A stretch of DNA of 64,000 bases from Piromyces finnis finn (lineage: Eukaryota; Fungi; Neocallimastigomycota), in NCBI GenBank assembly GCA_002104945.1, contig MCFH01000044.1, positions 186,001 to 250,000 of the forward strand, read 5' to 3'. Both the position numbers and the translations under genes were made by a program. The notes beneath the pieces are model-generated. The model worked only from the letters and a program-made list of their open reading frames with translations. It searched no databases and had not been told where the DNA came from. Shown here in pieces: positions 1-6,075 of the stretch (positions within the stretch are counted from its first letter, which is position 1; the number at the start of each line of letters is the position of its first letter).

Positions 1-1284
1 AGAGATCAAATTACTAGTTTATACAATTCACTTGTTGAATTCTTTAATGTTTTCAATAACTGCACACAAAGTAATTAATTAATACCTTTTAATAAGATTA
101 TTAAAAAATTTATGTCTAAAGCAATTTATTGTTATTATATTAAAATAAAGAAAGCAATAGTGAAGATGAATTAGACGAATTCCATGATATTATTATGCTT
201 GCTTTAGAATTGGTTGTTAACATTATTTCTATTGGTGATAATGGTGCTAATGATGAAGTTCCAGGATTAACTATTGATTCTGGTGATGTTATTTATACAG
301 CAATGAATATTATTATTCCAATGATTACCGAAAAACTATTATTAGTAAGTTGTAATTTTATATATATACTATTTATAATGATGAAGAAAAATTAGTAATT
401 TTTTTTTATTTTTTCATAATTAAAATAGCAAACTGATTTATGCATAAAATATATTGAAGTTATTAGTGATTTAATTGAATTCTACCCAACTAAATTACCA
501 AAATACGCAGAATCTATTTTACCAAGCATCATAAAATCATTAGAATTCGGAATTAATAGATATCCTTTTTTATACATTTATAGATACTTAAATAATTATA
601 ATATTTATAGAATATTTATTATTTTTCTTAACCCACTTTTTTTTTTTTTTGGTTATTACTGTAATTTATGATGTTGCTAAGGTTGCATTTAATGCCTTAT
701 TGAATCTTTCACAGTATTATAATAACCAAAGATTACAGGGTACTAACTTTGCAGAATTCTTAGAATTAGCATTGAATCATTTATTAGAATTAACTATAAA
801 GACATTACTCTTTGAAAATATTGAACAAGATTTGATTGGCCCAGCTAGTTCTTCTCTTTTAACAATGATCACCGCAAGAAAGGTGGATAATTTTTATTTT
901 CTATTATATTGAATAAAATTGTTATTTTCTATCATTTGAAAAATGTGATATTAACTATTTTTCTTTTTTCTTTTTTTTTTTTTTTTATACAACTAATGTA
1001 TTATGTTTATTCATTTCTACTAATATTAGAATATATACATTGAAATGTGTCAACAAATTATGTTGCAACAACAACAAACAAATGCTCAATATAGTCAACG
1101 TTTAGAAATGGCTTTCACTACCTTAAATAATGGTATAGAAGAAATATTTAATGAAAAAGAAAAAGAGCAACCGGGAAGTGTTCAAACAAAGATATATAAA
1201 TTTAACTATAAGGATTTCAATCAATTTGAAAAATTATTCTCTGCATTTTTAATTAATGTCATTGGATTCTTAAGAACTCATTAA
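1..1284 (+). CDS. XPO4: Exportin-4 (importin-beta family), 3' part; 5' end lies outside the window
   Basis: Spliced exons approx. 1-70, 151-344, 429-559, 660-882, 1030-1284 give ...DVIYTAMNIIIPMITEKLLL..LCIKYIEVISDLIEFYPTKL..SLEFGINSVIYDVAKVAFNAL..QRLEMAFTTL..FSAFLINVIGFLRTH*. This is colinear with the XPO4 C-terminus as recalled (VLYGVNLILPLMSQDLL/SLELGMTSMSSEV/QRLADAFNKL/FMANVGGLLCVK). Confidence 0.85.
560..659 (+). other. U12-type (minor spliceosome) AT-AC intron in XPO4
   Basis: 5' splice site ATATCCTTTT at 560-569, U12-like branch site TTTCTTAAC at 624-632, terminal AC at 658-659. Removal restores the frame (AG|T = Ser, GINS-VIYDVAK). No GT donor is available nearby, and read-through runs out of frame to a stop. 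Confidence 0.85.
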
Positions 1285-1907
1285 ACCTTCAAGATAAAAT
1301 AAACAAATAAACAAATAAATATATATTATTATTTTTATATGTTCTTTAGTTTCTATTTTTTCGTTATTTATTTATTCATTTCATTACATTTACTTTTTTT
1401 TTTTTTTTTCTTAATATATAAAATTAAATTATAAATACAAATATATCATTAATAATATTATAGAATTAGAATTATTCTAATCAACTATTAGTATAAACTA
1501 TTTAATTTATTTTATAATATATATAAAAATAAGATAAAATAAAATAACCTTTTTTTTTTTTTTAAAAAAAAAAAAAGATGGACTTTGATTATATTTAAAA
1601 ATTCTTTTATTTATCTATTCATTTTTTCTTTTATACAATGATGAATTTTATAATATTATAAAAGTATAAGTTGAAGATTAAAATAAAATAAAAAAAAAAA
1701 AAAAAAAAAAAAAAATCTAAAAGTGTGGGTGAGAGAGAAAGAATATATGAAATAAACTAAAATTATAGTAATAATAATAATAACAATAACAATAATAAAT
1801 AGATTTACTATTATGTTAAAGTAAATAAAAATAACAATTAAAAAAAGTTTAAAAGAAATAAAAGATAATATATTTATTTATTTTAAAATTTGAAAAAATA
1901 ATTATTT

Positions 1908-6075
<4,168 letters not shown>

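Follow-up and report, generated by a model that had tools for sequence, protein, structure and literature searches.

A probable U12-dependent AT-AC intron in XPO4, the exportin-4 gene of Piromyces finnis

Introduction

The genome of Piromyces finnis, a gut fungus of the phylum Neocallimastigomycota, is available as an assembly of 56.46 Mb in 232 contigs, with a G+C content of about 20%. The window analysed here is a stretch of 64,000 nucleotides of this genome, and its first lines hold the 3′ part of an exportin-4 (XPO4) gene in which two exons are separated by 100 nucleotides that begin with AT and end with AC. The question raised by this locus is whether these nucleotides (positions 560-659) are an intron of the minor, U12-dependent class, and whether the fungus keeps the machinery that would remove it. 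As argued below from sequence comparisons, the stretch is very probably a U12-dependent AT-AC intron, the 23rd of the 24 introns of the gene.

Piromyces finnis has already been named as a species with minor introns and minor snRNAs (Larue & Roy 2023, PMC10639083), and earlier reports of U12-type introns in fungi concern Rhizopus and Phycomyces (PMC2396436, PMC2846911). In animals, the first-pass annotation of this DNA had pointed to minor introns in genes of the XPO4/XPO7 family, and the literature bears this out for XPO4, whose U12-type intron is AT-AG in human and GT-AG in mouse (Sheth et al. 2006, PMC1557818 Table 3); a minor intron of mouse Xpo4 is also documented in PMC12956336. The mammalian and the fungal cases thus have in common the gene family and the presence of a minor intron, whereas the terminal dinucleotides differ.

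Gene structure and intron features

The gene is represented in public collections by the P. finnis protein BCR36DRAFT_586032 (P0007; 1130 amino acids), which is labelled hypothetical and bears the UniRef name Exportin-4. This protein matches mouse exportin-4 (chain 5dlq_B, its sole PDB match) full-length, over residues 22-1079, with an E value of 1.4e-79, and it shows a precomputed hit to the XPO4 family PF28490. Mapped exactly onto the DNA, it defines a gene with 24 introns, 23 of them GT-AG and one AT-AC. The features of the window that belong to this gene are the following:

151 to 344, plus strand: XPO4 exon, third before last (mapping of P0007; aligned to the spliced contig L011)
345 to 428, plus strand: ordinary GT-AG intron of 84 nt (mapping of P0007; missing from the spliced contig L011)
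429 to 559, plus strand: XPO4 exon before the AT-AC intron, whose 3′ end is AG, two bases of a Ser codon
560 to 659, plus strand: AT-AC intron, predicted U12 type, 100 nt, phase 2, removed exactly in orthologous spliced contigs
560 to 568, plus strand: 5′ splice site ATATCCTTT, matching the U12 consensus RTATCCTTT in 9 of 9 positions
624 to 632, plus strand: branch-site motif TTTCTTAAC, in which A631, at 28 nt from the 3′ splice site, is the candidate branch point
637 to 650, plus strand: 14 consecutive T that separate the branch motif from the 3′ splice site and increase their spacing
658 to 659, plus strand: 3′ terminal AC, in a context ...TTAC/TGTAATT retained in the genomic loci of relatives
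660 to 882, plus strand: XPO4 exon after the AT-AC intron (mapping of P0007 and alignment)
883 to 1029, plus strand: ordinary GT-AG intron of 147 nt (mapping of P0007; comparison with spliced contig)
1030 to 1284, plus strand: final XPO4 exon, with the stop codon TAA at 1282-1284

Positions 1290-1342 hold 3′ UTR and AT-rich downstream sequence. Full-length comparisons relied on the public protein, and exons were searched individually: exon C searched alone yielded no relative in the PDB, and single exons gave no match against Pfam. Word searches from single exons or from P0003 led to metagenome fragments only, the full-length proteins being reached by word search with the 660-residue open frame of contig L017. 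P0005 is an exon-sized ORF of another organism with identical exon borders.

The exon that precedes the AT-AC intron, which aligns with residues 938-976 of mouse exportin-4, closes with GGA ATT AAT AG at position 559. The intron opens with ATATCCTTTT at 560-569, and T660 completes the codon AGT (Ser), after which the reading continues as VIYDVAK. The 5′ splice site, branch motif, terminal AC and product (GINS/VIYDVAK) read by the first-pass annotation were all confirmed, and so was the long distance between branch and 3′ end, of 28 nt with 14 T, counted from position 631, the motif's second A, to the last base of the intron. The motif TTTCTTAAC agrees with the branch consensus TTCCTTAAC in eight of nine positions, and the single mismatch still leaves G-U pairing to the U12 box GUAAGGA. 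The junction itself cannot slide: base 559 differs from base 659, and base 560 from base 660. Taken by itself, the 5′ motif does not exceed chance in the window, where RTATCCTT occurs in 9 copies (7.5 expected); only the copy at 560 lies at an exon edge, the other eight being found elsewhere. What carries the case is the position of the motif, its conservation and the spliced contigs of relatives.

Use of the AT and AC borders

The public P. finnis model splices the AT-AC intron correctly, reading ...GINSVIYDVAK... over the junction, and is not mis-modelled. Across this junction, the segment SLEFGINSVIYDV of P0007 and the segment SLELGMTSMSSEV of 5dlq_B align free of gaps, with the split Ser codon opposite residue 978 of the mouse chain.

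Removal of the intron at exactly these borders is demonstrated in relatives. The JGI contig L011 (= L016), from a relative about 90% identical, has none of the three introns found here and shows the junction AATAG/TGTAATT. A second JGI contig, L017, is an exact match to the genomic exons of Neocallimastix 'constans' (L018, GCA_050613775.1) with 14 introns removed, among them the AT-AC intron at L018:6828-7034. These contigs without introns are mRNA-like and use the AT...AC borders exactly, and the protein of a further relative (P0008) has the same reading across the junction. The first part of L011 (L011:1-250) is not alignable to the P. finnis upstream region and carries a reverse-strand ORF; a chimera in the assembly is possible, as is a different exon upstream.

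In P. finnis itself, removal is supported indirectly, by the public model and by the share of words found in four sequencing runs of this organism, presumed to be RNA. Of the words sampled from window positions 150-1300, these runs contain a fraction of 0.58-0.61. Fully spliced RNA should give 0.62, and retention of the AT-AC intron 0.74; the runs thus fit, as indirect evidence, intron removal and not retention.

Could the AT and AC borders nevertheless be an artefact of modelling, with a canonical GT/GC-AG pair, or retention, as the real state? Such a reading would draw on the 11 frame-preserving GT/GC-AG combinations that lie around the site, and the first statement that no GT-AG alternative exists has to be narrowed on this account: frame-keeping pairs do exist, but every one of them deletes conserved residues or inserts junk such as a hydrophobic run, and the colinear product of the relatives results from none of them. 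Retention, for its part, would bring an in-frame stop at 669-671 and the loss of the last ~160 residues of XPO4. Moreover, in three relatives whose flanks are identical the borders used are exactly AT...AC, the spliced product is colinear with mouse XPO4, and the word share in the runs points to removal, all of which makes an artefact extremely improbable. Removal from AT to AC is therefore the preferred reading, and the stop met on retention suggests that full-length P. finnis exportin-4 would depend on minor splicing.

Machinery encoded in the genome

The first-pass annotation had taken the intron as a sign of a minor spliceosome in this fungus and had proposed an Rfam search for its four snRNAs. 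All four genes are present in the P. finnis genome, two of them with scores just under the cut-off, and they support the existence of this spliceosome:

U12 snRNA: 66.6 bits (Rfam cut-off 53)
U6atac snRNA: 52.1 bits (Rfam cut-off 33)
U11 snRNA: 38.2 bits (Rfam cut-off 39, just under)
U4atac snRNA: 49.2 bits (Rfam cut-off 53, just under)

The U12 snRNA keeps GAGUAAGGA, and its box GUAAGGA is complementary to TTTCTTAAC; the branch motif of the intron could pair with the U12 of its own genome. The U11 gene lies at L003:1380-1615 (G000:C152, about 317393-317628) and begins with the conserved 5′ end AAAAAGGGCTTATG. An AT-rich insertion of ~120 nt splits this end from the remainder of the gene, so that the true 5′ end, AAAAAGGGCTT, is found 120 nt upstream of the Rfam model match, which starts at L003:1501, and the low score of U11 is explained by this separation. 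A SNORD14-like C/D box snoRNA is located on the minus strand (L003:2162-2325), at a distance of about 550 nt from U11; its match of 52 bits is below the Rfam cut-off of 64.

The 5′ end of U4atac (CGUCCUUAUCU) forms a perfect pairing of 11 bp with U6atac (AGAUAAGGACG). This pairing is kept although both sides differ from human, which points to compensatory change and, in turn, identifies the locus as U4atac and not U4. U6atac is present as a single copy, in which GCCGA replaces the human AAGGA of the 5′ splice-site box, and this box pairs poorly with ATATCCTTT. A '[GU]CCGA' or CC variant has been described in Trichoplax, cnidarians, Acanthamoeba, Physarum, a moss and oomycetes, and species with a CC-variant U6atac are known to splice U12-type introns (PMC2396436). 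Decay of U6atac was considered as the origin of GCCGA and rejected, given the single copy, the co-variation with U4atac and the published CC variant. A further difference, seen at the loci L002:1501-1649 and L004:1501-1640, concerns the AGC triad of U6atac and its partner in U4atac. The A position of the triad is G in the P. finnis U6atac (GUUGGCAC, human GUUAGCAC). The stem I partner in U4atac shows the matching C (UGCCA vs UGGCA), which suggests selection rather than an error.

As for the proteins, a SNRNP25-type ubiquitin-like domain (36 bits) is found in the genome. Of the minor-specific proteins that the first-pass annotation had named for a search, SNRNP48 may be represented by a U11-48K CHHC zinc finger (27 bits), while the Pfam profile of PDCD7 (59K) gave no match in an exon-wise search of the genome, which is a weak test.

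On the established mechanism for introns of this class, the U11 snRNA would recognise ATATCCTTT with its conserved 5′ end (AAAAAGGGCUU), and the GAGUAAGGA of U12 would pair with TTTCTTAAC, bulging the branch A. The U4atac/U6atac.U5 particle would join next, and the RNA would be cut at AT...AC.

The poor pairing between the U6atac box and the XPO4 splice site would speak for another reading, in which the AT-AC intron is removed by the major (U2-type) spliceosome and the minor snRNA genes are either irrelevant to this intron or decaying. AT-AC introns of the U2 type carry major-type 5′ splice sites, whereas ATATCCTTT is a full U12 match that does not vary over four species of two phyla. Likewise, the complementary 5′ end of U11 is kept, U4atac and U6atac co-vary, and the species with a CC-variant U6atac splice such introns (PMC2396436).

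Distribution in other fungi

The genomic loci of four relatives (L006, L007, L008 and L018) show ATATCCTTTT at the same codon and ...TTAC/TGTAATT at the 3′ end. Beyond these, public XPO4 proteins from four further fungi were mapped to their own genes and then aligned. The XPO4 gene of N. constans shares 24 of 24 intron positions with that of P. finnis, the AT-AC one included. More distantly, XPO4 of Ambispora gerdemannii (Glomeromycotina) has a U12-type intron of 74 nt (L019:5239-5312) at the same codon and in the same phase 2; its exon continues as GGA ATT ACG AA/ATATCCTTTCC and, after the intron, as C CCC ATC TAT GAT. The 5′ splice site ATATCCTTT is identical in P. finnis, N. constans, the L006 relative and Ambispora, and the Ambispora branch motif, AACCTTAAC, is canonical. 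This intron therefore resembles that of P. finnis in codon, phase and 5′ site, and differs in its compact length and in a branch that lies 11 nt from the AC. With another AG in frame 3 nt before its AC, the Ambispora orthologue may end as AT-AG instead of AT-AC.

The public Ambispora model (P0009, GCA_910591945.1) has a GT-AG intron at 5224-5309 instead of the AT-AC intron at 5239-5312. It thereby drops the residues EFGITN and gains DT, and its intron falls six alignment columns off, beside a gap of five residues. Judging from the DNA, the splice of P0009 is an annotation error, in which a GT-AG-only model has replaced the U12 intron. The warning of the first-pass annotation that GT-AG-only gene finders mis-model such genes thus applies to the Ambispora orthologue and not to the public P. 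finnis model.

No intron is present at this XPO4 site in the chytrids Rhizoclosmatium globosum and Podochytrium or in the fungus of P0004, and the AT-AC intron has apparently been lost in some fungal lines. Since Ambispora carries it at an identical codon and phase, the intron must be old within fungi, older than the split between the chytrid lineage and Glomeromycotina. It would have been inherited from an early fungal ancestor, with codon and phase still shared by Glomeromycotina. The suggestion that the intron is ancient consequently stands within the fungi; its animal part amounts to the presence of a minor intron in human and mouse XPO4.

Distance between branch motif and 3′ splice site

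In U12-type introns, the branch point is usually found about 10-20 nt from the 3′ splice site. The P. finnis intron departs from this pattern, with 28 nt and a run of 14 T where introns of this class usually have no polypyrimidine tract. Classifiers of U12-type introns search for the branch site at -40 to -5, a range inside which 28 nt falls (PMC2846911). Among the orthologous XPO4 introns, the motif and its distance to the 3′ end are as follows:

Ambispora: AACCTTAAC, 11 nt
P. finnis: TTTCTTAAC, 28 nt
N. constans: TCTTTAAT, about 100 nt
L006 relative: CTTTAAT, about 95 nt

The motifs of P. finnis, N. constans and L006 are the sole U12-complementary ones in this intron, and the introns of N. 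constans and L006 have no good branch motif within 90 nt of the 3′ end. Their distant motifs lie in a block, AAGTTATnnCTTTAAT, conserved between these two species, and the stretch from motif to 3′ end is made of T-runs and AT repeats, free of AC or AG. These distant motifs may be the branch sites actually used, and the spacing pattern would then agree with a rule by which the first AC after a remote branch is taken. In AT-rich gut fungi, the expansion of T-runs and AT repeats would have carried the branch motif away from the 3′ end. It is conceivable, if somewhat doubtful, that the minor spliceosome of anaerobic gut fungi has lost the strict rule for the spacing between branch and 3′ end.

Removal by the major spliceosome would find support in the same distances (28 nt in P. 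finnis and ~95-100 nt in two relatives), as well as in the T-run before the 3′ end, which resembles a polypyrimidine tract. However, the orthologous intron of Ambispora carries a textbook branch motif at -11, and together with the invariant 5′ site and the conserved snRNAs this makes a U2-type removal very unlikely. From these comparisons, we infer that the intron at 560-659 would be U12- rather than U2-dependent.

Compared with the U12-type AT-AC introns of early-diverging fungi, the P. finnis intron shows the same ATATCCTTT, a branch motif like TTCCTTAAC, the terminal AC and a genome with four minor snRNAs. The difference lies in the branch, at 28 nt with a T-run in P. finnis and at ~95-100 nt in two orthologues of Neocallimastigomycota, as against the usual 10-20 nt.

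Across the whole P. finnis genome, ATATCCTT followed by TYCTTAAC gives 73 matches, compared with 57 in the reversed control, which is a weak enrichment. Several further pairs of ATATCCTTTT and T[CT]CTTAAC, 40-110 nt apart, occur, for example at C2:1082820-1082895, C13:201990-202063 and C112:1188693-1188762. From their motifs, these pairs look like other compact U12-type introns.

Significance

Minor splicing in P. finnis is already published, and the XPO4 intron is a sound but ordinary example of it. It contributes a further well-documented case of a minor intron, conserved in fungi from before the split between chytrids and Glomeromycotina, and, as a by-product, an annotation error in the public XPO4 model of Ambispora gerdemannii has come to light. 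For P. finnis, the intron implies that full-length exportin-4 would need minor splicing. Finally, the orthologous XPO4 introns show an expansion of AT repeats that shifts the branch motif, and they could serve as a test set for the branch spacing that the minor spliceosome requires.
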